A DNA stretch of 64,000 nt from sequence record PP942979.1. One strand, 5' to 3'. Of this stretch, positions 24,507 to 62,986 are shown in pieces. Below the pieces are notes generated by a model, which was not told where the DNA came from, ran no database searches, and was given only the letters and a program-made list of their open reading frames with translations. The stretch's first letter is position 1. Each line of letters starts with the position of its first letter. A program made the position numbers and the translations under genes.

Positions 24507-24767
24507 ATGATTTATGAACGCGAAGAACTTGAGGCGATGCCTCTCGATGTGCTGTATAACCTCGCTGGCGCTAAAGGTCTGTTAGACGATCTGACAGACG
24601 ATGATGACGCGCCTGATCGTGAAGCGCTGACTGAAATGATTCTCGAATCGCAGTCACTCGAACAGCAGGCAGACGAAGACGCTGCCGACAAGCAATGCGC
24701 CGAAGATGATCGCGACCCGCGCATCAATCGTCGTGATGGCCAAGACGGCTCGGATGATTACTGCTAA
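24507..24767 (+). CDS. Small acidic protein with HeH/Rho_N-like module
   Basis: GGAG RBS; ELEAMPLDVLYNLAGAKGL...REALTEMIL. Confidence 0.7.
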   Translation: MIYEREELEAMPLDVLYNLAGAKGLLDDLTDDDDAPDREALTEMILESQSLEQQADEDAADKQCAEDDRDPRINRRDGQDGSDDYC

Positions 24768-24985
24768 TGTCACCTACTGAACTGAACGAATACCTACATC
24801 TGGTGCTGACGCCTGTTGCTATGGCGTGGCGTGAACAGTTTCCCAAAAAGAAACAAGTGATCGCTTCGGTGAAAACGCCGTACTCTTGTCGTATCAAGTT
24901 CGTCGAAGACCAAGAAGTTGAGAAGCAGTGGCAGGCATTCTGCCGCACTCACGGTCTCAAGAACGAAGAAACACTCGAAATCTAA
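24767..24985 (+). CDS. Hypothetical protein
   Basis: TAATG coupling, 72 aa. Confidence 0.7.
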   Translation: MSPTELNEYLHLVLTPVAMAWREQFPKKKQVIASVKTPYSCRIKFVEDQEVEKQWQAFCRTHGLKNEETLEI

Positions 24986-24988
24986 ATC

Positions 24989-25018
24989 AAAGGGCTGCCA
25001 TTGCTGGTGGCCCTTTTT
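24989..25018 (+). terminator. Intrinsic terminator
   Basis: AAAGGGCTGCCA-TTGC-TGGTGGCCCTTT then TT. Confidence 0.85.
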
Positions 25019-25023
25019 CATTT

Positions 25024-25032
25024 CTGTAAATA
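25024..25032 (+). promoter_or_regulatory. CTGTAAATA motif
   Basis: Intergenic, just after a terminator, about 32 nt before ATG 25064. Confidence 0.55.
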
Positions 25033-25063
25033 ACTCGTACAACAATCAACGCGAGTCACTACA

Positions 25064-25429
25064 ATGCGCCGCTTCATTCTCGTTCTCAATGTCACTCAGG
25101 CAGAGCTAGACGCCAGCCACTTCATGCAAATCAAACTCAACATCATAAGCACCCTGCGCCGAGCCGCCTGTGTTCTGCTTGTTGTGCGTGAGACGAAACA
25201 GGTCATGTGTGTTTCTGAACTGACCTTTCAAACTGCGTCAGGCAATCTCAAGCGTGTTGACTTCGACGCACCTCGCGATGTTACTGCGCACGTTATCAAA
25301 TACAACGAACTGATGATGGCTATGGCAAACAACGCCAGAGACCTCAGCGTTCGTCACTTTGGCCGGCAGGTCGAGCTAGATACAGCCGACACCAAACGCC
25401 TGTTCACTCAACTGGAGATTATTGCATGA
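25064..25429 (+). CDS. Hypothetical protein
   Basis: 121-aa ORF. Confidence 0.7.
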   Translation: MRRFILVLNVTQAELDASHFMQIKLNIISTLRRAACVLLVVRETKQVMCVSELTFQTASGNLKRVDFDAPRDVTAHVIKYNELMMAMANNARDLSVRHFGRQVELDTADTKRLFTQLEIIA

Positions 25430-25671
25430 GTCAGTCATTAGGCGCCTCGCTTGGCGCTCGCTTTGCTGTTAGCTCACAAGAGAATATCGAACGCCGTAAG
25501 AAGCGTGACCCGAAAAACAAAACGCTGACCTGCGCTGGCACAACGGCTCAATACAACGCAATCGGAGTGCTGGCTAACAAACTCGATGTAAGCCGTTCGC
25601 GTGTTATCGAAATGGCCATCGAAGAACTGCTGGCTAAACACAATATCAAAGTCGGCGGTGATAATGACTGA
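25426..25671 (+). CDS. Ribbon-helix-helix (CopG-like) DNA-binding protein
   Basis: TLTC....QYNAIGVLANKLDVSRSRVIEMAIEELL fits the RHH pattern. Confidence 0.65.
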   Translation: MSQSLGASLGARFAVSSQENIERRKKRDPKNKTLTCAGTTAQYNAIGVLANKLDVSRSRVIEMAIEELLAKHNIKVGGDND

Positions 25672-26026
25672 CACGCATATCTACTGCCGTCTGTATGGTG
25701 TGCAGCATCGTCTAAAGATTACCGCCTTCAACTTTATGAAGCAGCCAAACATGATCACTGTCGATTCGTCTGATGTTCTCAAGATGATGCCGCTGATTAA
25801 TGTGGGTGCAGCCTATGATACATATACGCCGTACAATGTACTCAAGGCAGGGCAGGCTGACTTCAAGATTCGCCTGATCGAAAGAACTGATGCGCATGTC
25901 TGGCGCTACGTGTTCGAAGACTATCGCGGTCAGATGTTTGAAACGTTCTTGATTCGGAGACACTATGAAACGCCTAGGGATTGTAACGGTGTTGTCATTA
26001 AAGGACAAACAACCCAAATCATGTGA
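25664..26026 (+). CDS. Hypothetical protein
   Basis: MTDTHIYC start overlapping upstream stop. Confidence 0.7.
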   Translation: MTDTHIYCRLYGVQHRLKITAFNFMKQPNMITVDSSDVLKMMPLINVGAAYDTYTPYNVLKAGQADFKIRLIERTDAHVWRYVFEDYRGQMFETFLIRRHYETPRDCNGVVIKGQTTQIM

Positions 26027-26600
26027 TCTCGATATTGTGCCTGTGTCGAAAGACGAAGAATGGGGCTCACTGAGTCCCTTTCATTTAGGGCCGTGTCGAA
26101 CGCCTGACGGTACGATGTTTCTCAACATGGAGAATCTCTGGCAGTACAGCAAAGTGTACGACGACCATGTTATCAATTCGAATGACCTGTTCCTTGGTGA
26201 GATCTCAAGTGACTGGTGGCAGTGGCATTTGAAGGGAAGTAAATCACAACAGGCGCATCGCTATCCTATGGGAAAAGGCCAGAAGGCTTTATTCTCCAAA
26301 TGGGGCGACTTGCGCCTTTCGTACATTTCGGCACGTAAACAAATCTATGTGCCTGAGTATGCGAAGCTGGTTGTGCAGCAGCCGAAGTTCAGGCGCTTGT
26401 TGAAAGAGTATAGGAAAGGTGCGCACATAGTTTTACGAGACTATGACACCTACGATATTCTTCGTGCCTACCCCGATGCGCGTAGCCCGTGGGTATCGGC
26501 AATCGAAAACAACAATGCAAAGTTCGGCCATGCGTTTGTTATCGCACTGTGCCTGTTATTCCACGAAAGACCACTTTGGTATAATCAATGGATAATATAA
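25965..26600 (+). CDS. DUF6939-like protein (possible NADAR-related fold)
   Basis: LSPF..GP...MENLWQYSKVY...YISARKQIY...Y...GHA pattern recalled from giant virus and jumbo phage proteins. Confidence 0.5.
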   Translation: MKRLGIVTVLSLKDKQPKSCDLDIVPVSKDEEWGSLSPFHLGPCRTPDGTMFLNMENLWQYSKVYDDHVINSNDLFLGEISSDWWQWHLKGSKSQQAHRYPMGKGQKALFSKWGDLRLSYISARKQIYVPEYAKLVVQQPKFRRLLKEYRKGAHIVLRDYDTYDILRAYPDARSPWVSAIENNNAKFGHAFVIALCLLFHERPLWYNQWII

Positions 26601-26905
26601 AATACGAAGCCTGCATCGATCTATTCACACGCGCCGGAAACATGAACCTCCCGATTCTGCCTAAGTGTGAACTACAGGCCTCTCTATTCGATCAGTATAC
26701 GAAAAAGCGAATACCAGTTCGCTTCAACGCCACAAACGTAATCAAGATCAATGGCGCTACCTGCGGTAGTCTGCAAATCTTCGACTGTGTTAATCTGATC
26801 ATCTGGTCATCGTTTGATGTTAATCGCTTTACGCTGTATGTCGAGCGAGTACACAAGGCAGACGTGTCAGAGAGCGCCCAGCAGTCTGTCGAACTCTGCA
26901 AATAA
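26588..26905 (+). CDS. Hypothetical protein
   Basis: 105-aa ORF; stop is embedded in the promoter box. Confidence 0.7.
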   Translation: MDNIKYEACIDLFTRAGNMNLPILPKCELQASLFDQYTKKRIPVRFNATNVIKINGATCGSLQIFDCVNLIIWSSFDVNRFTLYVERVHKADVSESAQQSVELCK

Positions 26906-26950
26906 CTGGTCAAAATAGCCGTTCTTTTCAGTACCAGTTTATGTTATACT
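26900..26950 (+). promoter_or_regulatory. Box + extended -10 promoter
   Basis: AAATAACTGGTCAAAATAGCC ... TGT-TATACT. Confidence 0.8.
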
Positions 26951-26996
26951 GAGAGCGAGCGCTATTGCTCATAAAACTCAAGCTGAGGAGCTTAAC

Positions 26997-27314
26997 ATGT
27001 CATCTTCTACTACTCTGACTTTCATCTTCCCTGAAATGACCACTCTGGAAGTTTCTATCGGCAACGGCGTTGTGCCACAATATCTGGGTCTCGCGGAAAA
27101 CCGAGACATAACATTCAGCGACATTAAGGCGTTGCGCCTGATGCAAGACTCAAACGTTATCGGAGTAATGAGTCGCTTCGACCAGTCGATGCTGAATATG
27201 CTGATCGCTCGCCACGAAACGAACGAGCATATCCGCTGCCGTGACGCCATTGAGAATGGCAGCGAGTATTTCCCATCTACTTGTCTCTACCTGAAAGTAG
27301 CGCATCACCGCTAA
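26997..27314 (+). CDS. Hypothetical protein
   Basis: GAGGAG RBS, 105 aa. Confidence 0.75.
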   Translation: MSSSTTLTFIFPEMTTLEVSIGNGVVPQYLGLAENRDITFSDIKALRLMQDSNVIGVMSRFDQSMLNMLIARHETNEHIRCRDAIENGSEYFPSTCLYLKVAHHR

Positions 27315-27377
27315 GATTTGTGAAGGGCATTTGCGAGTGCCCTTTGAAAATCAAACCCACGTTCTGAGGAGAACAAA

Positions 27378-27734
27378 ATGACTTCTACTGAAATGCCACG
27401 CGATGCCCGTGCCTTTGACGACCTCGACAACAACGGCTTCTTGCGTATCACTAACTGCCTGTCGATCATTCTTTCTCGTGGCGACTTAGAACTCGTTACT
27501 GATATTGCAGATCGCACCGTCACAGTTAAGTATCGCACTGGCGCTGTGAACAAACTCGGACACGGACACGTTGTTCTGCGTTTCCCGTCTGAGGTCATTC
27601 AGTCTGATGTTCTTGAAGACTTCGAAGTGACCGTCGATAAAGACATTGTGATTCTTATCGAACGCCAGTACAGTTCGGCTGGAACGTTCCAGCGCATTGC
27701 AGGCGTGATTGAAGGTCTGATGTACAAACTGTGA
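27378..27734 (+). CDS. Hypothetical protein
   Basis: GAGGAG RBS, 118 aa. Confidence 0.75.
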   Translation: MTSTEMPRDARAFDDLDNNGFLRITNCLSIILSRGDLELVTDIADRTVTVKYRTGAVNKLGHGHVVLRFPSEVIQSDVLEDFEVTVDKDIVILIERQYSSAGTFQRIAGVIEGLMYKL

Positions 27735-27798
27735 TTGTTGCTCGCAGGTTCTTACGAGAGCCTGCTGTCAACATAACCCATAAGCTGAGGAGCTTAAC

Positions 27799-28203
27799 AT
27801 GAAACAGTACCCGCAACGTGGCCGTGTGTACACACTGAAAGAAATTGAGAACGACCTTGAACTGCGTGACACTCCGTTCTTGCGCTTCGTACCGCAGAAA
27901 GTACGTTACGTTGGAATGCCTGCTGGTATTCAGGTCATTCAGCAGGCGCACATTGCTGACCTGTCTGAGCTTGAGGGTTGGGCAGACACCAAATGGTCTT
28001 ACGTGCGTGAGACCGAAGAATGGATTCCGCTGTTCCGTGCTGTAGACGATGCTACAATCGAATCGCTCTGTGTTATCGAGCCTGACGTGTCGCAGTTCCG
28101 TTCTGACAACACGTTGTTCATCTACCCGAAAGGCACTGAGTGCAAACAGTATGATGGGTACGATGAAGCAGTTCACGGCGATCTGCTTGAACGCGACGAA
28201 TAA
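27799..28203 (+). CDS. Hypothetical protein
   Basis: GAGGAG RBS within a 20-nt block identical to that of 26997. Confidence 0.75.
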   Translation: MKQYPQRGRVYTLKEIENDLELRDTPFLRFVPQKVRYVGMPAGIQVIQQAHIADLSELEGWADTKWSYVRETEEWIPLFRAVDDATIESLCVIEPDVSQFRSDNTLFIYPKGTECKQYDGYDEAVHGDLLERDE

Positions 28204-28209
28204 CAAACA

Positions 28210-28240
28210 GGGATGCTCACGCTGGTGGGTGTCCCATTTT
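28210..28240 (+). terminator. Intrinsic terminator
   Basis: GGGATGCTCAC-GCTG-GTGGGTGTCCC then ATTTT. Confidence 0.65.
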
Positions 28241-28259
28241 ACGTTCAGGGAGGTTTCCT

Positions 28260-28712
28260 ATGGAAATGTTTGACCGCTCAAATGTGATAAGCGCAATCAT
28301 GCGCAACCTGAAAGACGTGCGTAAGATAAAAGACCTGCGCACGTTCGACGACAAGGTTTACTTTCGGCTTAACGACAAAGACTACTTTGTTTCTGGCAAA
28401 CACCCAGAGTTGAAAGTTGTCTGTCAAGGTCAGTACGACTACGAGATGATGGCACAACTCAACTTTGTGTATCGTCGTAAGATGAAGCCCAACACTGATA
28501 CGCCGATGCGCCTTGCTCGTATCGCTATGGGTGTGACGCTTGTTCAGGTAGCCAAAGAGATCGATGTAGATGCAGGCAACCTGAGCCGTATCGAACGGGG
28601 CATTCAGATCCCGGCGATGGAGGTAGCAGAGCGCATCGCCAAGTATTTCAATAACACAATAACAGCCATTCAAATTTGTCATCCAACTTATAAGGGAAAA
28701 ACTAATGCTTAG
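28260..28712 (+). CDS. XRE/Cro-CI-type HTH protein with extra N-terminal domain
   Basis: MRLARIAMGVTLVQVAKEIDVDAGNLSRIERGIQIPAMEVAERIAKYF. Confidence 0.85.
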   Translation: MEMFDRSNVISAIMRNLKDVRKIKDLRTFDDKVYFRLNDKDYFVSGKHPELKVVCQGQYDYEMMAQLNFVYRRKMKPNTDTPMRLARIAMGVTLVQVAKEIDVDAGNLSRIERGIQIPAMEVAERIAKYFNNTITAIQICHPTYKGKTNA

Positions 28713-29244
28713 CCAAATCACTCATATCATCCAAGTGATGATGACCAGCCTGAAAGATGTTCGTGCTGTCGAAGAAGTTCGTATCATCGGAGACAAAGCT
28801 GTACGTTTCCGTACTAACGGCAAAACGTTTGACGTGCGTGGTCATTACCCGCTGTTCTGTGTGCATGAGATTGAAGGCTCCTGCATGTGTGGATCGAAAG
28901 ATGCCTACGAGATCGAACGTCAACTCAACGGCGGACCTATTGAAAGTCAGGACGAAGAAGCCTTCGCGCATGACTCCCACGAAGAAGCGGTTAACGATCT
29001 GCTATGCAATCACGTTGATAGCATGGAAGAAGATCGTGTACGCGCATACAATGAAGAATGCGGCGGTCCTGACTTGGACCCAATCAACGGTCAACGCGTT
29101 TGGTTGAAAGCACACTTCATCCATATCAGTGCGGAAATCCCAAGCATGTTGGAGACCGTGATGTTCATGGAAGGTAAAGAGCGCTACGAGCAACTGCGTC
29201 GCGCAATCAAAGAGATTTACTCACCTAAACCAAAAGTAGCCTAA
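28705..29244 (+). CDS. Hypothetical protein; N-terminal domain paralogous to 28260
   Basis: Shared LKDVR...DK..FR.N.K.F.V.G..P pattern. Confidence 0.75.
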   Translation: MLSQITHIIQVMMTSLKDVRAVEEVRIIGDKAVRFRTNGKTFDVRGHYPLFCVHEIEGSCMCGSKDAYEIERQLNGGPIESQDEEAFAHDSHEEAVNDLLCNHVDSMEEDRVRAYNEECGGPDLDPINGQRVWLKAHFIHISAEIPSMLETVMFMEGKERYEQLRRAIKEIYSPKPKVA

Positions 29245-29256
29245 GAGGAAGTAGCA

Positions 29257-30134: not shown

Positions 30135-30143
30135 GGCATTATC

Positions 30144-32227: not shown

Positions 32228-32229
32228 TT

Positions 32230-49705: not shown

Positions 49706-50253
49706 TGGAACAGATTGATTTGTTTGCTTGGCCTGATTGTGGGCGCACGATGTATGAGGCACACACGCTGCTGGAGCCAGCAGTTCGAACGCCTGATTTT
49801 GCAGTACGCCAGATGCGTTATACTCATGCGGCCTTCGGCAATAGCGGGGCAATTGGCGGGGCACTCTTTCCGCAGAAGCTGAACAAGAAGATTGTCAGCC
49901 TGCACGAATTTATCATCGGCCCAAGCCCTGCGTTTCAGCGTGAGATAACTGCTGGCTCTGGTGATGTAGCAAACATGATGGACCCGCAGTATCTGTACAA
50001 CCTGTATCTGCATACAGAGACCGTTGCAATTCGTGTGTCTGAGTTCCATAACTTCACTGAACGGGGTCCGTTGTCTGCGCTGCACCTATTCACTGTGGCG
50101 ACTATTTATGAGATGCGCCTGATCGTTTACTTTGCAGATGACGGCATCGAAACTGATCGTGACCGTGAAGATTGGTTGCAGAGCATTCGTGGTTACTTCT
50201 CGAACCGCAGCAAGTTCCGTATCAAAGCAGAAAAAACTTTATTCACTAAATAA
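49705..50253 (+). CDS. Hypothetical protein
   Basis: TAATG coupling, 182 aa. Confidence 0.75.
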   Translation: MEQIDLFAWPDCGRTMYEAHTLLEPAVRTPDFAVRQMRYTHAAFGNSGAIGGALFPQKLNKKIVSLHEFIIGPSPAFQREITAGSGDVANMMDPQYLYNLYLHTETVAIRVSEFHNFTERGPLSALHLFTVATIYEMRLIVYFADDGIETDRDREDWLQSIRGYFSNRSKFRIKAEKTLFTK

Positions 50254-50289
50254 CCGCAGCGCTTACGGGCGTCGCACAGGAGAAACATT

Positions 50290-51546
50290 ATGTCATTCGA
50301 TATGCGCCAGAACGTACTCATGGTTCGCTCTTTGATTAACGGCCAACCGTTCTATTATTTCTACAACGCAGAAGGCCTGGAGTTCAGCCTGTCTGGTTAC
50401 CAGCTTAAAGAGATTTATGATCGTCACTTTGATGGTCGTATGTCTGCTGTCACTACTTACTGGGGCTTCACAAACAAGCCGAACTATGAGTCTTTCGAGT
50501 TTGCGGATAACGGTGACTTGTTGTGGCATGTTTCTCTGAATGCTGTGTGTCACACGTATCTGCCTCTTGAGATGGTTATCGGTCATGAAGGCTTCAACGT
50601 GATTAACGGATTCATGATCGAAGATCACAAACGCATGGTGATGAAGATTCATCAAAAGGCAGTGGGTCGTAGCGTTGAAAAACTTACATGGTTCCATGAT
50701 ATGTCCGAAGAGCGTATGCGTGAAATGCTGAATGCTCTTGGTCACGGTCCGCTGCGTATTGAACGTGCTGATCGTGAAGAACTGATTAAGATTCATCGGG
50801 ACTGGCAGCGTAAGCACGACGAAGAATTTAAATACACGCACAACGCCTGTGGTATTGATCCGGAAGACAAACTCCCTGCTGACCTGTACGACGATCACGG
50901 CAAGTGGTTGCGCCAGCGGCACATGGCAAAAGGCAAAACGCTTGAGATGATGGCCAGCGAACTTGCGAACATCGTCCGCATCTTTGACCTGTACATCGGC
51001 GATGATGACTTTGACCACATGAATCCGGATTGGGACGAAGGTCTGCGTCGTGTTGCTCAAGCATTCATCTACGGGCCTAACGCCAAAGAGCGTTTCGATG
51101 AAGTGAAGTATAATCCTCAATTCGTTGTCAATGGTATCTATGCGTTGGCGAAAGACTTGAACTGGATTCATGTTAACGAAGAATCTCAGGACTATAAAGA
51201 GTCGTTGATTCGTCGCCTGATGCAAGAACTGAAAAACGAAGTAGAACGGCCGGACGGGGTGTTCGTTCTTGAAGACGGTGTAGTAATGTTGAAAGCTGCC
51301 TTGGCAGTAGCGAACGCAGAAGAGGAAGAAGAAGAAGAGGACGATGATTCTTCCGCTCGCGCAGAAGTGCGTACCTACCTCGAAGGTCTCAGTGAAGAAA
51401 AGCTGCGTACAGTAGCAATTGATCACAAGCTGGCCAAGAAAATGAAGATTGCCAAGATGGCCAAGAGCGAGCTGGTGGACTTGTGTGCTGACTATTTCGG
51501 CTCAGACTTTCCTGAGGACGAAGAAGAGGAAGAAGAACACGAATAG
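50290..51546 (+). CDS. Hypothetical protein with C-terminal HeH/Rho_N-like module between acidic runs
   Basis: AGGAG RBS; YLEGLSEEKLRTVAIDHKL...KMAKSELVDL. Confidence 0.8.
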   Translation: MSFDMRQNVLMVRSLINGQPFYYFYNAEGLEFSLSGYQLKEIYDRHFDGRMSAVTTYWGFTNKPNYESFEFADNGDLLWHVSLNAVCHTYLPLEMVIGHEGFNVINGFMIEDHKRMVMKIHQKAVGRSVEKLTWFHDMSEERMREMLNALGHGPLRIERADREELIKIHRDWQRKHDEEFKYTHNACGIDPEDKLPADLYDDHGKWLRQRHMAKGKTLEMMASELANIVRIFDLYIGDDDFDHMNPDWDEGLRRVAQAFIYGPNAKERFDEVKYNPQFVVNGIYALAKDLNWIHVNEESQDYKESLIRRLMQELKNEVERPDGVFVLEDGVVMLKAALAVANAEEEEEEEDDDSSARAEVRTYLEGLSEEKLRTVAIDHKLAKKMKIAKMAKSELVDLCADYFGSDFPEDEEEEEEHE

Positions 51547-51615
51547 CCTGAAAGAACTAATTAAACACGCAACACTTTAATCTTCCAATCATACCTAACA
51601 TTGTAGGGAACAAAA

Positions 51616-52038
51616 ATGAAATTCGAACAAAACATTCTGGTAGTAAATCGCATCGCTCTTATCATGAACGACGAACTGGTGCAGAAGTGGGGTGATGCAG
51701 CAAACGCTGATCGTAATGCTACAGCGTATGCAACTGCAATCATTCTCGCCAAACTTCAACAGCGCGTGTCCGTCGCTCTGCATACCGAGAATCCTGAGGC
51801 GTGTGCTCGTCCTGAATTGCTCTGGACAGACTACGGTTCTATTTCGGTAAGCGGCCTGTTTATCATCGCCTCTACTTCGGATAAAGAGGTGCTCAATCAC
51901 TACGAAGACCATGACTATCTTAATCATCTGCACACAATCAAACGTGTAGCGGAAGAGAACGGATTTAAGTTAACGGTCGTTCCTGTGAAAGCGAACTTCC
52001 CGTTCTCTAATACTGAAATCCCTGCCAGTATGAAGTGA
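51616..52038 (+). CDS. Hypothetical protein
   Basis: 140-aa ORF. Confidence 0.75.
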   Translation: MKFEQNILVVNRIALIMNDELVQKWGDAANADRNATAYATAIILAKLQQRVSVALHTENPEACARPELLWTDYGSISVSGLFIIASTSDKEVLNHYEDHDYLNHLHTIKRVAEENGFKLTVVPVKANFPFSNTEIPASMK

Positions 52039-52046
52039 GGTGATCT

Positions 52047-52346
52047 ATGAAGCGTGAACACATTCCGATGATCGATGCCGCTATCGTTTTAACGATGGAA
52101 GAAAGTCGTAGCTTTATGGGTCAACGCCCTGATGGCTTTGTCTATCTGCCGAGCAAGGAAGCACTGGAGAAGTTCGAAGCGCATATTCAGAAGCACCGAA
52201 GCTATGACAGCTACAGCACTATCCTGCACCGCGAGCTTCACGCTATCAGCGCTGAGGGCGTCGATGCGCTTACTGCTGATATTGAGCGCGATTCAAGCAA
52301 GCCCTGGATGTGGTCAGACGTAGACTACCGTATCAAGCTGTGGTAA
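52047..52346 (+). CDS. Hypothetical protein
   Basis: GAGGTG RBS, 99 aa. Confidence 0.75.
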   Translation: MKREHIPMIDAAIVLTMEESRSFMGQRPDGFVYLPSKEALEKFEAHIQKHRSYDSYSTILHRELHAISAEGVDALTADIERDSSKPWMWSDVDYRIKLW

Positions 52347-52348
52347 GC

Positions 52349-52399
52349 AAATAACTGGTCAAAATGACGGTAGTATCTGAAACCGCATTATGATATACT
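52349..52399 (+). promoter_or_regulatory. Box + extended -10 promoter
   Basis: AAATAACTGGTCAAAATGACG ... TGA-TATACT. Confidence 0.8.
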
Positions 52400-52452
52400 A
52401 GAAGCGTAGCGACTGCTGCGCTTTTTTAACTTATGTCTGAGGAGACAACAAA

Positions 52453-52917
52453 ATGCTGCAAGAAACTCAAGCCACCCTGTCCGATATCGAACTGCAAGAC
52501 CGCATGGTAGATGCTGCCGCCCAGAAACTTATCGAACTGAAACCTGAGTGGGTTGACGTTTGCGCTGCGGCACTTCGTTTATATCTGACCGTGTGCGAAC
52601 AACTCGGCGGTGAAATTCCTGAACTGCGTTTTGTTCACAACTGCCGTCCGACTCGTTTGCAGTTCCGTCTGGCGGAAAGTGTTGAGGGTGAGGAGTTCGT
52701 TGCCAACGAACTCAACAAAGAACACCAGATGGCTATGGCCGAAGCAATTCTCGATGTTGCCGAAGCAAACGAAGATGGCCACTCGCTGATGGATTTAGCT
52801 ATCTCCTCTGGTCGTCTGTTCATGATTGGTTACGACGGGCTTGCAGGTACGCTTGATAAGATTTGCTTCCGTAGTCATAAAAAGAACTACACCATGAATC
52901 TGGTTAAAGAGGCTTAA
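52453..52917 (+). CDS. Hypothetical protein
   Basis: GAGGAG RBS, 154 aa. Confidence 0.8.
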   Translation: MLQETQATLSDIELQDRMVDAAAQKLIELKPEWVDVCAAALRLYLTVCEQLGGEIPELRFVHNCRPTRLQFRLAESVEGEEFVANELNKEHQMAMAEAILDVAEANEDGHSLMDLAISSGRLFMIGYDGLAGTLDKICFRSHKKNYTMNLVKEA

Positions 52918-52918
52918 C

Positions 52919-53575
52919 ATGAAACAGGAATACACTCTGCTTAAACGAAGCAAAGTTGATGTTAATCGTTTTGCTTTCGTGTGTGATGGCGAGGTGGTAG
53001 CCAACTTTACTGCTGGCCAGTTGTTCGTGACAATGCAAAAACTCAAACACGCCGACGCTATTAAAAACGTCGATGTGCTCTGGCGTGACGGTACGCGCAC
53101 AGTTGAAGAACTGCGTGTGGTTGAGCAACGACGATTTATTCAATTCGATATGCTCGAATATGAGCATTCGATTTGCTTGCTGATGCGAGCACAGGGGCTG
53201 CCTGTTGAGTTGTCCGTTCCTGTTGACGTGCGCAAGCTGTTTGATAAGCATGGACCGTTTATCACAGAAATTCGTGTGCCGTCAGAACTCGTTGCTGATC
53301 TGCATCCTGCTTTAGAGCGCTTCACTCCAGACGAAGACGACGATATGGATGAAGACTTTGATGAAGACGACGAAGCGGAGGATATGGATGACACTGACTT
53401 TGGCTTCCGTCCAGAAGACATTCGCCAGCAGTTAGGTGATTTTAACTATCGCTCACCGGATTGGGTTGTTACTATGACTGATGTTCAGGTGGATGAAGTA
53501 AATCATCTTGAAGTCGGCATCGACCCTGACATTGAACTTCCTCGTGCGGCTGACGCGAAGGACGAATTTTTCTAA
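52919..53575 (+). CDS. Acidic hypothetical protein
   Basis: GAGG RBS, 218 aa. Confidence 0.8.
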   Translation: MKQEYTLLKRSKVDVNRFAFVCDGEVVANFTAGQLFVTMQKLKHADAIKNVDVLWRDGTRTVEELRVVEQRRFIQFDMLEYEHSICLLMRAQGLPVELSVPVDVRKLFDKHGPFITEIRVPSELVADLHPALERFTPDEDDDMDEDFDEDDEAEDMDDTDFGFRPEDIRQQLGDFNYRSPDWVVTMTDVQVDEVNHLEVGIDPDIELPRAADAKDEFF

Positions 53576-53766
53576 TGAAAAGTACAAACGATTTGGTCAA
53601 AGAGTTACGCAGACACGGCCAGCTTACTATTGACGAGCGCGAGAAGCACTTGCTGCCAGATTTGACGTTCACGCTTGATTGCCTGTGTATCACATACAAG
53701 AAGCGGGAAGTAGAGACTACCAAGCGTGGTCGTGTCATAACAATAAAATTGACCACCGTTCATTAA
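53575..53766 (+). CDS. Hypothetical protein
   Basis: TAATG coupling, 63 aa. Confidence 0.65.
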   Translation: MKSTNDLVKELRRHGQLTIDEREKHLLPDLTFTLDCLCITYKKREVETTKRGRVITIKLTTVH

Positions 53767-53780
53767 CAATCCAGAGTTTG

Positions 53781-53891
53781 GCTCGCCCGTCCAGAAATGC
53801 TCAATTCCCCAAGTGAGGTGCTTCGCGCAGAAGCATGACGGTGCGGGTCCTTTTTGAAGCGTACTAATCGAGTGTGTTTCACAAAGAACCC
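53781..53891 (+). ncRNA. Candidate structured cis-regulatory RNA
   Basis: Intergenic; 53781-53791 can pair with 53837-53848, enclosing two hairpins; a competing long hairpin spans 53845-53891. Confidence 0.35.
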
Positions 53892-53911
53892 AAAACAAAC
53901 AGGAGGCTGTT

Positions 53912-54304
53912 ATGAAGTTTAACGATGTGAGTAAAGATGCTCAGGTCATTCTTATGGGCGCTGCACTTGCTGGCGTGATCGAAACGTTCGGACGTGACGC
54001 CGAAGATGAAGGCAAGCAGTTGATTGAAACTGCGTTGCGCCAAGTCGGTTTGACGTTCGACGAGTTCCGCGTCCTGATGACCGAAATCGCACCTGAAGTT
54101 GAAGCGGAAGTTGCGTCTGTCCAGACAGTAGTTGCTGATCCGGACGATGACTTCGAGGACGAACAACTGGACACAATGGAAGAACGTCCAGGCAATCTGA
54201 ACGATGATGGGCGCACTGATGAAAATGGCTGGCAAGATCTTGACGAAGATACTGTGTGCCAGATGTGCGGCAAAGAACACTGCGAATGCAATCGCATAGG
54301 GTGA
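53912..54304 (+). CDS. Acidic protein with C-terminal CxxC...CxC
   Basis: AGGAGG RBS; CQMCGKEHCEC. Confidence 0.75.
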   Translation: MKFNDVSKDAQVILMGAALAGVIETFGRDAEDEGKQLIETALRQVGLTFDEFRVLMTEIAPEVEAEVASVQTVVADPDDDFEDEQLDTMEERPGNLNDDGRTDENGWQDLDEDTVCQMCGKEHCECNRIG

Positions 54305-54308
54305 TCAA

Positions 54309-54521
54309 ATGAGCCGACGCCCAACGCAAGATGAAGTGAACGGCCAGATAGCTGCCTCAGAAGAACAACGCTATAGCGAGCGTGAGGCTCAATATGCTGA
54401 TTGGTCAGATGACGATTTACGCAATGCGCTGTTAGAGAACGGTCTAGTCTTTGATGACGACGACTTGGACGACTACAGCCGACAAGACTGTCTCAGACTG
54501 CTTATGGGCAGTGGCTACTAA
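54309..54521 (+). CDS. Small acidic protein with HeH/Rho_N-like module
   Basis: YADWSDDDLRNALLENGL...YSRQDCLRLL. Confidence 0.7.
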   Translation: MSRRPTQDEVNGQIAASEEQRYSEREAQYADWSDDDLRNALLENGLVFDDDDLDDYSRQDCLRLLMGSGY

Positions 54522-54523
54522 GC

Positions 54524-54574
54524 AAAAATCTGGACAAAATGACGGTTGTCTCAAAACAGCGTCCGTGTTAGAAT
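54524..54574 (+). promoter_or_regulatory. Box + extended -10 promoter (first of a tandem pair)
   Basis: AAAAATCTGGACAAAATGACG, TTGTCT 17 nt before TAGAAT, TG extension. Confidence 0.8.
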
Positions 54575-54580
54575 ATAGAT

Positions 54581-54740
54581 GTAGGGCGCATATCGTGAGG
54601 AGTGCGCTCTATATGCGAATGACGCGATTCGCAGTACGAGAGAAGTTCTTGACCGTGTGTTTTCGTTTTTCCCGGACACACGGTCCTTTTTCAAGTGCCT
54701 TCGAAGTTTGAGGGTGCTTGCGAAAGGGTAGATACTCTTT
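54581..54740 (+). ncRNA. Candidate small structured RNA (alternatively a 32-aa leader peptide, 54613-54711)
   Basis: Own promoter; five consecutive hairpins, including a perfect 10-bp stem followed by CTTTTT. Confidence 0.45.
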
Positions 54741-54769
54741 GAACACTGCCAGCTATCTGGGAAGTATGC

Positions 54770-54821
54770 AGAAAACTGGACAAAATCGTGGTTGTTATCT
54801 GACGGCCACCTGAGCTATACT
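54770..54821 (+). promoter_or_regulatory. Box + -10 promoter (second of the pair)
   Basis: AGAAAACTGGACAAAATCGTG, TTGTTA, TATACT. Confidence 0.75.
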
Positions 54822-54880
54822 ATATGCAGACGCATTGAGCGTCGCAAACAACATATCACTTATACTGAGGAGTATTAAAC

Positions 54881-56488
<1,608 letters not shown>

Positions 56489-56576
56489 GTTCGACCTGTA
56501 ATACAAAACACTGATGATAGATGCGGTTCAGACAGAGCCGCATCTCTGACAACTAAGCTGATTGAGGAATCACACT

Positions 56577-57842
56577 ATGTCAAACGCAAACAAAATCCTG
56601 TTAAACGCTCGTGTTCGTCGTCTGGACGGTACTGTAACTTTCATCAACAAAGTAAACGCGAACGGATATAGCACCGACGCGAAGGGACCTCAGATCCCGG
56701 TCAAGCGTCTCGTAGTCGCAGGCAAAACTCTGAAAGAGATTGAGTCGCCGTTCTCGAAAGAGGAGCACGTAATCGTGCAGGGCGTATCAGTCAAACTGAA
56801 TAAGCGCCAGCAGCGTGAACTTGCTGATGGCTCGCTCGATGTTAAGTCTTTGAACCCTGACTTTGGTAAGCTGGTCTTCATCGACCCTGAAACAGGCAAA
56901 GCGACTGACGGGAAAGCCGTGAAGTCGAAAGCGAAAGCGAAAGATAAAGACGGTGTGAAAGCGGGTGTGAAAGCTACTCGCCAGCGCAACAAAGATACGC
57001 GCACTAAGAAAGAACGTAAGGCAGAAGTCGCTGCGTCAAATGACGAGCTGGACATGTTGCCGTCTGATAAGATTGATCGTAAAGCAGAGCTGGCCGGTAT
57101 CATCGACGCGACTGTGGCTGATGCGACAACCAAAGAACGTCGCAAGCTGTTGTCCGAAGCGTTCGATATGGACTGGAAAGATGTGAAGAAGCATGGCGGT
57201 AAAGGCGTCATCAAACATCTGGGCCGCAAAGCCGCGCAGTCTGCTGTGAATAAACTGAATGCTACCGTAACGCAGGATGCTTTCATTAAGCAGATGCCTG
57301 TTGCGTTGAAGCGTCTGATTCAGGACGGTACGTTGACGCTTAACAGAGCGCAGATTGAGCGCGTACTGAGTGCGCTTGACCTCGACGTGAAGTTCTACAA
57401 CATTGCTATGCAGACACTGTTGGGCAATCTCAAGCTGTCACTCGACCAGTCTGTCGCTGAGCCGAAAGCTGGTAAGAAAGTGAAGAAGGTGAAGAAAGCA
57501 AAAGCTACTTACGCCTCAGAGAAAGAGCAAAAGCGCCGTGTTAAGAAAATGAAACACTCGCTGATTGCTCCGCCGAAGAAAATGCTGAAAGAAGCGAAGG
57601 CCCATATGAAAGCTGCCAAAGCGGCTATCGCACAAAAGCTGGGTATCTCTTCGAAAGAAGTTCAGCGGGGTCTGCTGGTGTATCGTGCGAACGGCGATGA
57701 ACTGATGTTTGTTGCCTGTGATATGACGGGCCCTGTGTTCATCGGCAACGACGGTGAAGTGGCAGTGATTGCCTACGCAAACGTAGAGACTGCCTTCGAC
57801 TTCACTCTGAGCAAAACCTCTGAACTGGACGCCACTGTATGA
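56577..57842 (+). CDS. 421-aa Lys-rich protein paralogous to 54881
   Basis: GAGG RBS before MSNANK; shares the LDGT.T.I...A.GY...EIE N-terminal domain. Confidence 0.85.
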   Translation: MSNANKILLNARVRRLDGTVTFINKVNANGYSTDAKGPQIPVKRLVVAGKTLKEIESPFSKEEHVIVQGVSVKLNKRQQRELADGSLDVKSLNPDFGKLVFIDPETGKATDGKAVKSKAKAKDKDGVKAGVKATRQRNKDTRTKKERKAEVAASNDELDMLPSDKIDRKAELAGIIDATVADATTKERRKLLSEAFDMDWKDVKKHGGKGVIKHLGRKAAQSAVNKLNATVTQDAFIKQMPVALKRLIQDGTLTLNRAQIERVLSALDLDVKFYNIAMQTLLGNLKLSLDQSVAEPKAGKKVKKVKKAKATYASEKEQKRRVKKMKHSLIAPPKKMLKEAKAHMKAAKAAIAQKLGISSKEVQRGLLVYRANGDELMFVACDMTGPVFIGNDGEVAVIAYANVETAFDFTLSKTSELDATV

Positions 57843-58222
57843 CAAACAATGAAATTCTTTTGTCAGGTATGTTTGCTCAACTGTATGCGCGGCTGATGAC
57901 GGCCGCTGTATTGAAAACCCACGTGTACTACTCTGACTTGGCGCCGATTGTGTTCGGCGTCCAACTGTCGGTGATTAGCAGTGCGCAGTACGATGCTCTG
58001 TGGTCGCTTGTAAAAGAAACCATGAGCGTCGATATAGCTCACGGCAGGCCACCGCTTGCTGCGTTGTATGTATCAAGGGCATCTGATAGCAAGCTGCCTG
58101 CTAAGAAGTTCTTTCGTGAGTACCACAAGCTCACGGGCAAGAATTTGTCAGAAGCTGAATGGCAAGCACTCGTCGAAAATGTGTGGGAACACTATCAACC
58201 AAATCTTCGGGGTCTTGTATGA
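57839..58222 (+). CDS. Possible winged-helix DNA-binding protein
   Basis: VYYSDLA...GRPPLAALYVS...LP...FF pattern. Confidence 0.5.
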   Translation: MTNNEILLSGMFAQLYARLMTAAVLKTHVYYSDLAPIVFGVQLSVISSAQYDALWSLVKETMSVDIAHGRPPLAALYVSRASDSKLPAKKFFREYHKLTGKNLSEAEWQALVENVWEHYQPNLRGLV

Positions 58223-58680
58223 AAAAGTCAAAGGTCACAATCAGTCGGGGAGGCTACAAACCCTCCTCGCAAGAAGAGGCACAAAAGCTGGTGGCCGAGT
58301 TCATTCTTGGTACCATCGGTATCAACCCTACTGTTATCAGTCAGCAAATGCTGTTGAACGTTGCGAACTATAACTACCTGACTTCTATCGCCGACACTGG
58401 AAAAGCTAATCAAGCGAACCAGAGCGCATTGCATAAAACTGTAAAAGAACTTAATGCGTTCTGTAGATTGCACAAGATCTCGCTGGGATTACTAATTATG
58501 CCGCATACGTCTGCCAGCGATTATGCTGGTGACGAGGTTGTAGCGATTCCGTGGGAGCATGTGCAGAAAAACGCATTGAGCCAGTCGGCCATCACATCTC
58601 TGTTTGAAACAGTTGAAGCTGATGGTTATCCGCAGTTTGTGACTGATGCGAAAACAGTAGAGGGATACAATGTTCTATGA
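58219..58680 (+). CDS. Hypothetical protein
   Basis: ATGA coupling, MKKSKVT. Confidence 0.75.
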   Translation: MKKSKVTISRGGYKPSSQEEAQKLVAEFILGTIGINPTVISQQMLLNVANYNYLTSIADTGKANQANQSALHKTVKELNAFCRLHKISLGLLIMPHTSASDYAGDEVVAIPWEHVQKNALSQSAITSLFETVEADGYPQFVTDAKTVEGYNVL

Positions 58681-59950
58681 TCACGTATTCAACCACGACG
58701 AAAAGCAATTGCTTCTGTCGGTGGCTGAGTCTAAGTATCTGGTGCGGCTAGACTGCCCAGATTATTTGAAGAAGTCGAAACACGCAATTGAAGTTCGTCA
58801 TACCGTAACCAACCGCGGCGAGCAACGCCGTAGCGGAACAATAACAACTGCGTTTGTGCCTCGTATTCATTCAGCAACCGTACAGCGTTTGGTGCGTGAA
58901 GTGCGTGACACTCAAAGCAAAAGCGCGTCGTCCAGTCTCGCTGCACTATTCGAGCTTGGACTTGGTGTACCGAAGCAGCACGATATTGCGGTATACCTGA
59001 AAGACTACTGCCAGGAAAATGATAAGAAGGGTGTGGGTATCAAGTATATCCGCAAACTGATTAACGAGTACCATCGCAAGCACCGCCATAGTTTTGCAGG
59101 TAGTCGCTGGCTGATGCCTGCTGCGTATACAGCGAACATGCTGAACATGCAGTCCTTCATTCATCTGAAAGAAGGTGGTTACTCGAAGAAAGTGAAGGTA
59201 CCTGACGGCATTCCCGTTGTGTTCATCTATCAGAACACGAACCACGAGAAAGCAACCTTTACTTTGTGTGACGCATTCACGATAAGCCCGCTCGGCTATC
59301 CGATGCCGTTCGCGCAAATAGCTTTACGACCTGAGTTCAAAGCTGCACCGAAAGAGTTCAAGTCGAAAGCACTTCGTGGCAGAAGCATGTACGCGATGGT
59401 TATGGGCGTTGTCTACTGGGGAGAAGGTGATGCGCTTGATAACTTCCGCGAGCTACAGGAAATTGACGATGACCCGTATCTGACGTTGCTGACTAACGAC
59501 AAGTACGCTGATCGCCGTAGCCCTGAGTATCAGGAGCTGCTGGACCAGCGCATTGCGTTAAACGAACAGGCGCCAAAGTGGAACGAGATTATTGCGAAGT
59601 ATGGCAATACAACTCGCGTACTCAAGCCTGAGCAGGCAGAAAAGCTGGAGCAAGCAAACGAGTTCTTCCAGCAGCGTAAAGAGTTCATGGACGCTTTCGA
59701 CAAGTTCGAAAAGAAAGAGAACCATCACGCTGCGAAGCAATTTGCTGCGGCCAAAGCGCTGTTTGCTGCCGTTGATTGTGGCACTATCATGGACCGCACA
59801 ACGTACATGTCAGTGTCGTCCGGTCTTGACGATGTGAACAACATTCTCACCAAGTGGGGATTCACTACAGTCAACACTGTTAATAGTAGTTTGAAGAAGT
59901 CTATCCTTACTTACGACCGTAAAGGCGCAAGTCGCGTCTGGTCCCTGTAG
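58670..59950 (+). CDS. Hypothetical protein
   Basis: GAGGG RBS, 426 aa. Confidence 0.8.
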   Translation: MFYDHVFNHDEKQLLLSVAESKYLVRLDCPDYLKKSKHAIEVRHTVTNRGEQRRSGTITTAFVPRIHSATVQRLVREVRDTQSKSASSSLAALFELGLGVPKQHDIAVYLKDYCQENDKKGVGIKYIRKLINEYHRKHRHSFAGSRWLMPAAYTANMLNMQSFIHLKEGGYSKKVKVPDGIPVVFIYQNTNHEKATFTLCDAFTISPLGYPMPFAQIALRPEFKAAPKEFKSKALRGRSMYAMVMGVVYWGEGDALDNFRELQEIDDDPYLTLLTNDKYADRRSPEYQELLDQRIALNEQAPKWNEIIAKYGNTTRVLKPEQAEKLEQANEFFQQRKEFMDAFDKFEKKENHHAAKQFAAAKALFAAVDCGTIMDRTTYMSVSSGLDDVNNILTKWGFTTVNTVNSSLKKSILTYDRKGASRVWSL

Positions 59951-59977
59951 ACAACATATCTGAGGAGATAGTACAAC

Positions 59978-62900
59978 ATGTCTAATAATAACCTGGGCGC
60001 TGCTGCATCATTTGGTACCGAGACGCAAAAGCAAATCGCTAACGAACAGCGCCGCGCTAATTCGTCTGAGAGCGGTCATGTGAACAAATGCACCATCGTT
60101 GTTCTGACTGCGTTGAACGCGCATAACCGTTTCTCGTATCTGAGCGCGGACGAACAACTCTGTGAAAAGCCGATTGAAGGCAAAGTAATGGATCGTCTGC
60201 CCAACCTGATCGAACGCGCATCTGGCGCGTCGACCGACCAGAACAGCGCGTACTACATTCTGCATCCGAACAACGGCGTACCGACTCGCATCGACGAGCG
60301 TATCAAAGTGGGTGAAGGTGACGCGGTCATTATTTCGTATACTGTAAATAAAGCAGTGTCAGAGATGCACGGCAGTTTGTCTCTCGCATTGTTCAGTGCG
60401 GGCGAAAGCGACCTTGCAGACCTGGCCGCCGAGTTTGGTATTCACGCCATCTCGATTGTTGAAGAAAGCAAAGCTGGTGGTTATATTCAAGCGCTCGCCG
60501 CACAGGTAGAAGCTCTGAATATTGTAAATATCACAAGCATTGATGAAACTGACGGCGCTCTCGATAAAGCAGTAATCGACTACAGCGCGTTGCCGGCCAA
60601 TCCTGTTACTGTGCTGTCCGGCGCTGTGCGTACTTTCATCATGCAAACTATTAGCAGCGAAATCGTTGCTGCAATTCCAAATAACGGAGAACTGAACGTG
60701 AAACAACCTACCAACTCAACGCCTGTCGATCTGAACGAAGACTTCGACGCAGAAGACGAAGTTGTTGATCAGCAGGACGGCGGTGAAGACGAAGCTGCGG
60801 TCGGCACGGACCTGTTTGGCTACAAGGCTGAAACGCTGAGTGTCGAGCAAATGTCCGAAGCGCTCGAAGCTATCGACTACGATCTGTCTGCTATGGATGA
60901 AGACGGCATCCGCGAATCGTTCGAAACTGAGCAGGCCATCTGGCTGGCAAAATCTGATGACGCCGCTGCCGACGACGCGGACGACGCCGAAGATGAAGAA
61001 GAGGAAGAAGAGGACGACGAAGACGAAGAAGGCTTCGACGCTGTTCAGTTCCTCGCTTCTCTGCTGATGGCCGAAGACTTCGACCGCGATGCGCTGAAAG
61101 TTCTGGTCCGTACTCAAGACCTGAAAGTAATGAAGTCGGACACTGTTGAAACTCTGTCTGCTAAACTGCTGGAGCTGGTCGAAGGCGCAACCGAAGAAGA
61201 GATGTTTGAACTGATCAACACCTTCGTCGGCGCGCTGCAAGAGCGTGAAATCGAATGCCCGAACATGCTGGCAACTATCGCTGAGGAAGAAGACAGCGAA
61301 GAAGAAGATGCCGATGAAGAAGACGGCGAAGACGAAGAGGAAGATTCTGAGGAGGAGGAAGATGAAGACTCCGAAGAAGAAACCGAAGAAGAAGACGGTG
61401 ACGAACTGCAAGACCAGATCGAAGCTGTTACCGACCCGCTCGACTACTTCCAGTTCCCGGGCGGCGCTCTGTCTGCTGAACAACGCATGGCTGCTGTTGA
61501 AGCTATGGGCGAAAACGTTGAAGGTCTGACTATCGTGCAGGTAATGAAAGCGTTCACTCGCATTCAGGGCCAGACCAACGAAATCGCGGTAGAAGAAGAC
61601 GCCGAGCTGTCTAACGTTGAACAACTGACTGCGCTGCTGGGCCAGTACGACGAAGCGACCGTGCAGCACGTTGCTGAAAGCCTGGGCATCCTCGTTGACG
61701 AATGCGAAACCGTTGACGAAATGATCGAAGCGATTGCAAACGGCGGTAACGAAGATGACTTCGCTGCTGTTGAAGAAATCGCAACCAACTACGGTGTTGA
61801 CCTGTCCGAAGTTGCTGACGGCGAGGAGCTGGACTTTGTTGACGCTCTGCTGGCAGTGCTGCCGTCGTTCCTGAACGATGATGAAGTTGGCGAGCAGGAC
61901 GAAGAAGAAGACAGCGAAGATGAAGAAGACGCTGACGACGAAGATGAAGATGAAGTCGAAGCTGCTGGTGATGCCACTGCTGAGAACGATCATCTGAAAT
62001 TCGTTAAGTCCGTTGATACCTCCAATCGCGTCGGCCCGATGCTGACTGTCGATATGGACCAAACGCTGATCATCAACTTCACTCTGACCGACGGTGATAC
62101 TTACGCACCGATTGAAAGCGAACTGTCTGACATTAACGGCTTCAACTACCGCTACCCGTTCAACCTGGGCAAAGCTGGTAAAGCACCGGGCGCGATGCAC
62201 CTGCCGGCGCAGTCTCTGCTGGATATCATTGAGCGCACCAGCACCACGCGCTTCATGGCTAACCCGGCAACGTTCGATGTTGCAGCCTGGGCGGAAAGCC
62301 TTGAAGCAACTCTGGAAGATGAAATCGCATCCTCTCTGTATGCCGGTCGCATCGAAGAAGGTCTGGACCCTACCGAAGCCGGTCTGATTGTCGGTGACTT
62401 CATCGACGACGAAGAAATGCAGCAGGCAAGCGAACTCGGTTACATCGACGCTGACCAGTTCGACGAGCTGCAAGGTGATCATCTGCCGATTGCTGGTCTG
62501 TACAGTGCTAAGTCTCGCGTTCGTCCGGTGCAGGTTGATACTGCTCACGTCGCGCTGCACACCACTGTGATGAACGTCGCTGTTCCTGGCTTCTGGGGCG
62601 ACTCTGATGTTTCTCTGCTGGTGCAGGCTGCTGTTAACCGCGTTATCGCTCTGGCCGGTACTGTTGAAAACATCCGTGTGTACGCTGGCTTCACGTTCGA
62701 ATCTGCCGCACTGCTGAACAACGACCGCCTGTTTGCTGCGCTGACCGCTCTGCGCACCATGGAAGGCGTACAGTCTTACTCTGCTGCTGACGCTGCAAAC
62801 TTCGACGACGCCGAAGACGTAATCGAAGTAGCAAGTGCGCTGGACACCCGCGACCTGCCGCTGTCTATTCTGTCTGGTGGTCTGGCTGCTGCAACGTTCG

Positions 62901-62986
62901 ATAACGGCGGTGACCTGACTGTGCTGGTACAGTGTTCTCCGGAAGACGAAGAGTCCGAAGAAGAAGACGAAGGCGACGACGAGTAA
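59978..62986 (+). CDS. 1002-aa extremely acidic protein with repeated short helical modules
   Basis: GAGGAG RBS; D/E runs alternate with helical modules; terminator follows. Confidence 0.85.
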   Translation: MSNNNLGAAASFGTETQKQIANEQRRANSSESGHVNKCTIVVLTALNAHNRFSYLSADEQLCEKPIEGKVMDRLPNLIERASGASTDQNSAYYILHPNNGVPTRIDERIKVGEGDAVIISYTVNKAVSEMHGSLSLALFSAGESDLADLAAEFGIHAISIVEESKAGGYIQALAAQVEALNIVNITSIDETDGALDKAVIDYSALPANPVTVLSGAVRTFIMQTISSEIVAAIPNNGELNVKQPTNSTPVDLNEDFDAEDEVVDQQDGGEDEAAVGTDLFGYKAETLSVEQMSEALEAIDYDLSAMDEDGIRESFETEQAIWLAKSDDAAADDADDAEDEEEEEEDDEDEEGFDAVQFLASLLMAEDFDRDALKVLVRTQDLKVMKSDTVETLSAKLLELVEGATEEEMFELINTFVGALQEREIECPNMLATIAEEEDSEEEDADEEDGEDEEEDSEEEEDEDSEEETEEEDGDELQDQIEAVTDPLDYFQFPGGALSAEQRMAAVEAMGENVEGLTIVQVMKAFTRIQGQTNEIAVEEDAELSNVEQLTALLGQYDEATVQHVAESLGILVDECETVDEMIEAIANGGNEDDFAAVEEIATNYGVDLSEVADGEELDFVDALLAVLPSFLNDDEVGEQDEEEDSEDEEDADDEDEDEVEAAGDATAENDHLKFVKSVDTSNRVGPMLTVDMDQTLIINFTLTDGDTYAPIESELSDINGFNYRYPFNLGKAGKAPGAMHLPAQSLLDIIERTSTTRFMANPATFDVAAWAESLEATLEDEIASSLYAGRIEEGLDPTEAGLIVGDFIDDEEMQQASELGYIDADQFDELQGDHLPIAGLYSAKSRVRPVQVDTAHVALHTTVMNVAVPGFWGDSDVSLLVQAAVNRVIALAGTVENIRVYAGFTFESAALLNNDRLFAALTALRTMEGVQSYSAADAANFDDAEDVIEVASALDTRDLPLSILSGGLAAATFDNGGDLTVLVQCSPEDEESEEEDEGDDE

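Follow-up and report, generated by a model that had tools for sequence, protein, structure and literature searches.

A small helical module shared by polyacidic proteins of Erwinia phage phB78 and its relatives, with a predicted HeH-group fold

Can several extremely acidic and hypothetical phage proteins be connected by one small folded unit, and to what would such a unit attach them? This question is raised by a 64,000-nucleotide stretch of DNA (hereafter the window), which corresponds to bases 186001-250000 of record PP942979.1, from the Erwinia phage phB78 (Alexandravirus); window positions 50000-63000 match record positions 236000-249000 at 100% identity (megablast). phB78 is a jumbo myovirus with a genome of 261,824 bp, whose genes are mostly annotated as hypothetical. 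According to its annotation, it encodes its own sigma factor, SSB, UvsX-like recombinase, DnaB-like helicase and type II topoisomerase, and neither a chimallin nor a multisubunit RNA polymerase is annotated. A first-pass annotation, made from the letters of the window, proposed that a module resembling HeH (helix-extended loop-helix) and Rho_N domains recurs in at least five acidic proteins, here called A to E (Table 1), that it is flanked in each of them by runs of aspartate and glutamate (D/E), and that it may dock many disordered proteins onto one partner (DNA, RNA polymerase or a scaffold). The six peptides on which this proposal was based all exist in the reading frames given for them, within annotated coding sequences (CDSs), and proteins A-E are each annotated as hypothetical. 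Family scans of the whole proteins and of their neighboring genes against Pfam, NCBIfam and PHROG returned nothing informative.

A mobile module recurs in B, D and SHZ78_312

A module of approximately 40 residues recurs in phB78 as a mobile domain, and profile comparisons establish the homology of its core copies, with the consensus D-L-E-D-L-(S/D)-E-D-E-L-R-x-x-V-V-x-A-K-L-x-T-x-K-K-A-K-K-M-D-x-x-E-L-x-x-L-L. The seed profile was a gap-free alignment of the C-termini of the D family, the B family and a third family that is known from relatives and missing from phB78, and was run with filters off on all 4,422 six-frame open reading frames (ORFs) of the phB78 genome, rebuilt from record pieces. 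It recovered D and B, and in addition SHZ78_312, a protein that had not been part of the seed and that carries two copies (independent E-values of 1e-5 and 2e-9), against an E-value (E) of 0.65 for the best reversed-sequence control; the next real match was protein C, at E 0.91. SHZ78_312, with its two copies the richest carrier in phB78, was missing from the first-pass list because its gene lies beyond the end of the window. Enlarged to 57 distinct modules, the profile retrieved the four phB78 copies with per-domain E-values of 1e-15 to 1e-19; C reached E 0.51 and controls E 1.7 or worse, and A and E were absent from the matches. Membership in the profile, judged over 38-43 positions, extended to B, D and both copies of SHZ78_312 (E 1e-15 to 1e-23), and an independent six-frame search of the records arrived at the same four places in phB78, and at three to six places per relative. 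The proposed recurrence is hence clear for B and D, holds in a divergent form for C, and is unsupported for A and E by profile searches, hhalign and decoy comparisons.

The modules of B and D have 13 of 40 residues and 51 of 120 bases in common, and are therefore not a recent DNA repeat. Across five relatives of D, the module retains 75-92% identity with 0-2 gaps, compared with 49-62% identity and 5-6 gaps in the acidic linker just before it. Judged from these alignments, the module is under selection, being kept almost without insertions or deletions while the acidic linkers vary in both sequence and length. Among polar positions, conservation is highest at R11 and in the loop K24-A25-K26-K27, whose residues are present in 41, 50, 31 and 39 of 57 modules, respectively.

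The three core carriers place the module in different surroundings. In B, a globular N-terminal part leads into an acidic run, after which the module is followed by an acidic tail; in D, an N-terminal domain and a K/A-rich tract come first, a small domain then occurs twice with a polyacidic run after each copy, and the module forms the C-terminus; in SHZ78_312, an N-terminal helical part and a K/A/G-rich tract precede the first module, which is separated from the second by about 80 D/E residues, and an acidic tail closes the protein. A helix pair at the N-terminus of the SHZ78_312 family was considered as a further module and rejected, with an hhalign E of only 0.025. Net charges of the carriers are -34, -74 and -97, and their D/E runs reach 21 residues. 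The reported D/E flanks are found in B, D and E, as well as in SHZ78_312, and not in A or C, where the acidic run lies inside the loop rather than beside the segment.

The distribution of the module extends well beyond phB78. It is nevertheless rare: among 1.84 billion cluster representatives, only 23 proteins matched the profile at E <= 1e-3. The module occurs only in phage-like proteins, in one to four copies, and nearly all carriers have it next to or between long polyacidic tracts, often along with a basic K/A/G-rich tract. The recurring plan, to which SHZ78_312 conforms, consists of a short N-terminal helical part, a basic K/A/G-rich tract, a module, 40-80 D/E residues, a second module and an acidic tail; other settings are the end of D-like proteins, and three to four tandem modules after unrelated N-terminal domains (P0008, P0009 and P0015). 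As traced through these matches, the module is shuffled among at least five Alexandravirus gene families and onto unrelated proteins of other phages. Between C and D, relatives of phB78 have an additional gene with a module; in phB78, a 360-bp non-coding gap takes its place. In Dickeya phage AD1, the module of this intervening family is a stand-alone ORF of 50 amino acids (AD1_311), and the former host gene ends in an acidic tail. Orthologs of B in four relatives are 50-130 residues longer and all end in a different conserved C-terminus (..LTKMKDGDRYPRD..LKELIKHA..); the profile places the module internally in three of the four and detects none in the SNUABM_1 ortholog, and the B proteins of phB78 and SNUABM_30 end soon after the module. 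A scan of IMG/VR with protein D found nothing, being swamped by poly-E patterns.

Carriers are usually encoded among replication and recombination genes. The gene of the four-module protein P0009 comes immediately after PDDEXK and AAA_24 genes and has a family-A DNA polymerase gene upstream of it, and that of the two-module protein P0017 stands between family-A DNA polymerase and RecA-like genes, with a clamp-loader gene nearby. The idea that P0008 is a gp32-like single-strand-binding protein found no support in Pfam, PDB, NCBIfam or a BLASTP comparison with the phage's own SSB. In phB78, the carrier genes lie upstream of those for topoisomerase II, in a stretch that encodes strongly acidic and strongly basic proteins. 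Within this stretch, D and the product of the next gene have only an N-terminal domain of about 52 residues in common (BLASTP E 5e-4) and are of opposite net charge (Table 1); the small domain of D is internally duplicated, with a polyacidic run after each copy. DNA nearly identical to window positions 54300-57900 occurs in metagenome runs of soil, plant and phyllosphere origin, contributed by about a dozen studies, and no RNA runs containing this segment were found. The papers found for this phage group report no virion proteomics for AD1 or Alexandra.

Table 1. Coordinates of the proteins, modules and other features discussed in the text
Feature	Position	Strand	Remarks
Protein A (SHZ78_245)	window 24507..24767	+	86 amino acids; annotated CDS
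Protein B (SHZ78_296)	window 50290..51546	+	418 amino acids; isoelectric point (pI) 4.9; annotated CDS
Protein C (SHZ78_303)	window 54309..54521	+	70 amino acids; pI 4.1; annotated CDS
Protein D (SHZ78_304)	window 54881..56488	+	535 amino acids; net charge -74; annotated CDS
Protein E (SHZ78_309)	window 59978..62986	+	1002 amino acids; net charge -198; annotated CDS
SHZ78_312	record 250661-251458, 661-1458 bases beyond window end (L012 1661-2458)		265 amino acids; net charge -97
Core module in B (VRTYLEGLSEEKLRTVAIDHKLAKKMKIAKMAKSELVDLCADY)	window 51367..51495	+	profile E 2e-20, 2.5e-15; genome search E 4.5e-22
Core module, C-terminus of D (SEDLEDLSDDELRDRVVEAGLTTPRKADKMNASQLRKLLK)	window 56366..56485	+	profile E 1e-23
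Divergent module in C (YADWSDDDLRNALLENGLVFDDDDLDDYSRQDCLRLL)	window 54393..54503	+	residues 29-65; hhalign, decoys, predicted fold
Claimed segment in A	window 24525-24641	+	not shown to be the module
C-terminal part of A (..AEDDRDPRINRRDGQDGSDDYC)	window 24690-24764		about 25 residues
E1	window 60824..60961	+	residues 283-328 of E; repeat of E3
E3	window 61409..61582	+	residues 478-535 of E; repeat of E1
Non-coding gap between C and D in phB78	window 54522-54880		
Gene next to D	window 56577-57842		pI 9.9; net charge +31
Module-bearing gene between C and D in relatives	L005 5988-6695; L006 6251-6979; L004 7676-7828		
Longer B orthologs	L003 1531-2946; L004 1542-3143; L005 1388-3034; L006 1668-3284		
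P0009	L023 6001-7320		4 modules
P0017	L026 8001-8507		2 modules

Predicted fold and relation to known families

Structure prediction with AlphaFold2 returned a helix-loop-helix for the modules of both D and C, as the first-pass annotation had proposed. The model of the D module, predicted from a four-sequence alignment of the window and G001 copies, has a pLDDT (predicted local distance difference test score) of 90.9, with helices at residues 9-18 and 32-39 and a one-turn helix at 24-28. That of C, predicted from 13 sequences (pLDDT 78.7), has helices at residues 7-30, 34-43, 50-55 and 58-68, so that a long N-terminal helix precedes the same succession of elements. Both predictions display the arrangement that defines the HeH group, i.e. 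an extended linker of about 8-12 residues between two helices of about 10 residues each.

When the D model was compared with 48,161 chains by an exhaustive aligner, about 17 of its top 50 matches were HeH-type domains. Residues 3-39 of the RNA-binding domain of Rho ranked second (Z 4.9, root-mean-square deviation (rmsd) 1.8 Å over 37 residues), and the SAP or SAP-like matches comprised SLX4, E1B-AP5, FAN1, Hcc-1, PIAS1, Ku70, SF3B2, MKL1, MANF and CDNF, of which the FAN1 SAP domain superposes on the model at rmsd 1.4 Å. Further matches were the LEM domains of emerin and LAP2, the C-terminal hairpin of T4 endonuclease VII, and YqbF. Matches of HeH type had an rmsd of 1.4-2.1 Å over 34-39 residues at Z 3-5, perhaps reflecting just a common arrangement. 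The top match of the C model was again Rho (residues 1-43, Z 5.2, rmsd 2.0 Å), with LEM, SAP and the SAP region of DEK also listed. In the library of viral models (BFVD), the top matches were the module family itself, and nearly all functionally named matches were Rho termination factor N-terminal domains, HeH/LEM domains or SAP domains, with Rho_N making up the majority. It is this enrichment of HeH-type domains among the matches, and no single score, that carries the argument for the fold: according to the models, the module very probably has the fold of the HeH group (SAP/LEM/HeH/Rho_N), in which two helices are linked by an extended loop that includes one helical turn.

Comparisons with Pfam gave hints below threshold. 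Rho_N reached 16 bits at best, in P0015 (cut-off 24.9), SAP (PF02037) 15.3 bits on the D segment (E 0.015, 13 residues, cut-off 23.9), LEM 13.5 bits on D (E 0.055, first helix only, cut-off 24) and Ish1 17.3 bits on C (E 0.006, first helix only, cut-off 26.6). When 25 carriers were compared with Pfam, Rho_N was the only family matched twice, and SAP was matched once (E 0.005). All of these hints fall into one fold group, and since no threshold was reached, the module represents a separate, new sequence family within it. The proposed likeness to HeH and Rho_N thus holds for the predicted fold of the core module, with its Rho, SAP and LEM look-alikes, and does not amount to membership in a Pfam family.

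The individual relatives differ in what they have in common with the module. Rho_N (PDB 1a62), the best or second-best structural match of both models, likewise combines an acidic first helix with a basic second helix; unlike Rho_N, the module has a loop that is about 4 residues longer and contains a helical turn, and no OB-fold RNA-binding domain follows it. SAP domains, many of which are among the top 50 structures, have the same helix-loop-helix and the same succession of L-x-x-L, E-L-R in helix 1, a (G/K)-L cap, a lysine before helix 2 and L-x-x-L-L, yet the score is sub-threshold, the loop of the module is longer and its carriers are phage proteins. DEK joins a SAP box to long acidic stretches, and resembles these phage proteins in that respect. 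LEM domains, matched at Z 2.8-3.8 in emerin and LAP2, are tethering units on otherwise disordered proteins, a role similar to the one suggested for the module; LEM (PF03020), HeH/LEM-like (PF12949) and Ish1 (PF10281) all remain below their cut-offs, and LEM binds BAF, a protein that bacteria lack. Among phage protein families, phrog_30618 is defined by SHZ78_312 and also matches the C-terminus of B, and phrog_33433 matches D over its full length; the module region of phrog_30618 additionally matches D and metagenomic carriers. Both are clusters of whole proteins without function, and neither describes the shared module as a domain.

Protein C, and the segments in A and E

Protein C consists of a long N-terminal helix followed by a divergent form of the module, in whose loop the sequence VFDDDDLDDY replaces the T-x-K-K-A-K-K-M of the core family, so that the loop is acidic and its charge inverted. 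C stays below the HMMER threshold (E 0.5-0.9), yet is the top sub-threshold match. A word search retrieved 12 relatives of C beyond the query's own cluster, and the profile of this C family aligns with the module profile in register over 36 columns, with a two-residue insertion in the loop (hhalign E 3e-4, probability 40%). On its own, C scores 18.5, compared with a maximum of 14.6 over 800 decoys, which were random 70-residue windows from phB78 proteins (0/800 as high). Based on these comparisons and its predicted fold, we accept C as a divergent, borderline member of the module family.

For A and E, the alignments to the module that the first-pass annotation anticipated were not significant. 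The segment in A had no HMMER match to the module profiles and reached hhalign E 0.08-0.14 over the first helix only, and 75 of the 800 decoys (9%) scored equally high. The C-terminal end of A, about 25 residues in length, is much more strongly conserved than the hairpin at its N-terminus, and this holds even in Sasquatchvirus Y3. In E, where several copies of the module had been reported, none is supported: HMMER found no match to the module profiles, and five islands showed no match beyond chance by hhalign and decoys (decoys scoring as high, out of 800: 10 for E1, 100 for E2a, 126 for E3, 414 for E4a and 358 for E4b). What E does contain, as aligned with its orthologs, are conserved helical islands that alternate with variable polyacidic linkers. 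E1 and E3 are repeats of each other (LSxEQ...A.EA.G..., hhalign E 5e-5, probability 67%, 34 columns), E4a and E4b form a weak repeat (E 0.0017), and, by the same comparisons, the E1/E3 repeat is distinct from the module. A and E may nevertheless share the fold of the module despite the absent sequence signal. The ESM Atlas held no usable match for C or for the center of E.

A possible DNA tether and its rivals

Alignments and models together show a conserved and mobile unit that is predicted to fold independently. The explanation that we favor as a whole, with a probability of about 0.45, is that of a mobile family of HeH-fold modules acting as a DNA tether. SAP and LEM-like domains contact the DNA backbone through a basic loop and the beginning of their last helix, and the corresponding basic face of the module, formed by the K-A-K-K loop and the first part of its last helix, would grip the backbone as they do. 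Through this grip, proteins that are otherwise disordered and charge-blocked would be kept on phage DNA while it replicates and recombines, and their acidic tracts would modulate the binding or draw in basic proteins that bind DNA. One partner in common, as the first-pass annotation supposed, would be reasonable for a mobile module. The conserved basic loop and the replication and recombination neighborhoods point to DNA as this partner, whereas no evidence for RNA polymerase or a scaffold emerged; DNA would also be the most economical choice, as carriers occur in phages with different gene sets. That the module binds DNA, by way of the K-A-K-K loop, is suggested by analogy to these domains, and DNA binding is put forward tentatively, at odds somewhat short of even.

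Several observations weigh against this explanation. No Pfam model of the HeH group reaches its cut-off for the module, Rho_N (PF07498) has no match at E <= 10 in the six-frame phB78 genome even though control genomes do match, a sequence-profile search of the PDB returned no relatives of the module, and Foldseek against the PDB gave nothing significant (E <= 0.001), though FAN1 was among its matches. Z-scores of 3-5 for a helical hairpin of 40 residues are within the range of a common arrangement, and the models were predicted from alignments of little depth, with 4 and 13 sequences. As for binding to DNA, the module lies within acidic tracts that are expected to repel it, and the acidic loop of C cannot bind DNA in the same way. 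Moreover, several solved look-alikes bind proteins, i.e. the emerin LEM domain binds BAF, SLX4 binds MUS81, and MANF and CDNF bind BiP.

These complexes, formed by several of the best look-alikes, speak for a protein partner instead: the hairpin would bind one conserved hub, e.g. a replisome or recombination protein, SSB or a host protein, and recruit the acidic proteins to it. Phage single-strand-binding genes are usually positioned after AAA_24, and the multi-copy array in the tail of P0009, encoded after AAA_24, recalls the acidic partner-binding tails of single-strand-binding proteins; the charge-inverted loop of C might form a pair with a module whose loop is basic, or compete for a partner. 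We nonetheless regard such docking as rather unlikely. No particular partner is singled out, the differing gene repertoires of the phages with carriers make a single phage-encoded partner unlikely, and the conserved lysines of the loop are more typical of backbone contacts. Less probable still, and in our view improbable, is that the module has no common partner and is a small, stable helical cap that limits proteolysis or provides spacing, with the work being done by the acidic tracts through DNA mimicry, or by sequestering basic host nucleoid proteins or polyamines. Extreme negative charge is indeed the most striking property common to the carriers, and family and PDB searches attach no function to the module; however, the module is far better conserved than the acidic tracts, including at the surface-exposed R11 and K-A-K-K loop, and it has moved between gene families and stands alone as an ORF in AD1, all of which argues for a function of its own. 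Finally, the odds are very small that the likeness as a whole arose by chance among amphipathic helix-loop-helix segments of charged, low-complexity proteins. Chance does fit the segments in A and E, which are no better than decoys, but for B, D and SHZ78_312 such an origin is excluded (E 1e-15 to 1e-23 vs E 0.65-1.7 for reversed controls), and for C, which no decoy equaled, it is unlikely.

The DNA-tether explanation could be carried further, in a form that we consider a long shot. Jumbo phages without a protein nucleus may organize their replicating DNA with chromatin-like, charge-blocked proteins, in which HeH modules would provide the anchor, K/A/G-rich (H1-like) tracts and polyacidic tracts of 40-80 residues would drive multivalent, condensate-like assembly beside topoisomerase and recombination genes, and small charge-inverted variants such as C would serve as regulatory decoys. 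Such proteins would be the phage counterpart of DEK-type architectural proteins that combine SAP with acidic stretches.

The present outcome is a modest result of domain annotation, with no new mechanism. It does provide, in the form of a shared, foldable and conserved module, the first experimental handle on the extreme proteins of phB78. If the module is indeed a DNA tether, a class of polyacidic jumbo-phage proteins would be linked to genome organization or replication, and a phage-specific family would be added to the SAP/LEM/Rho_N group.

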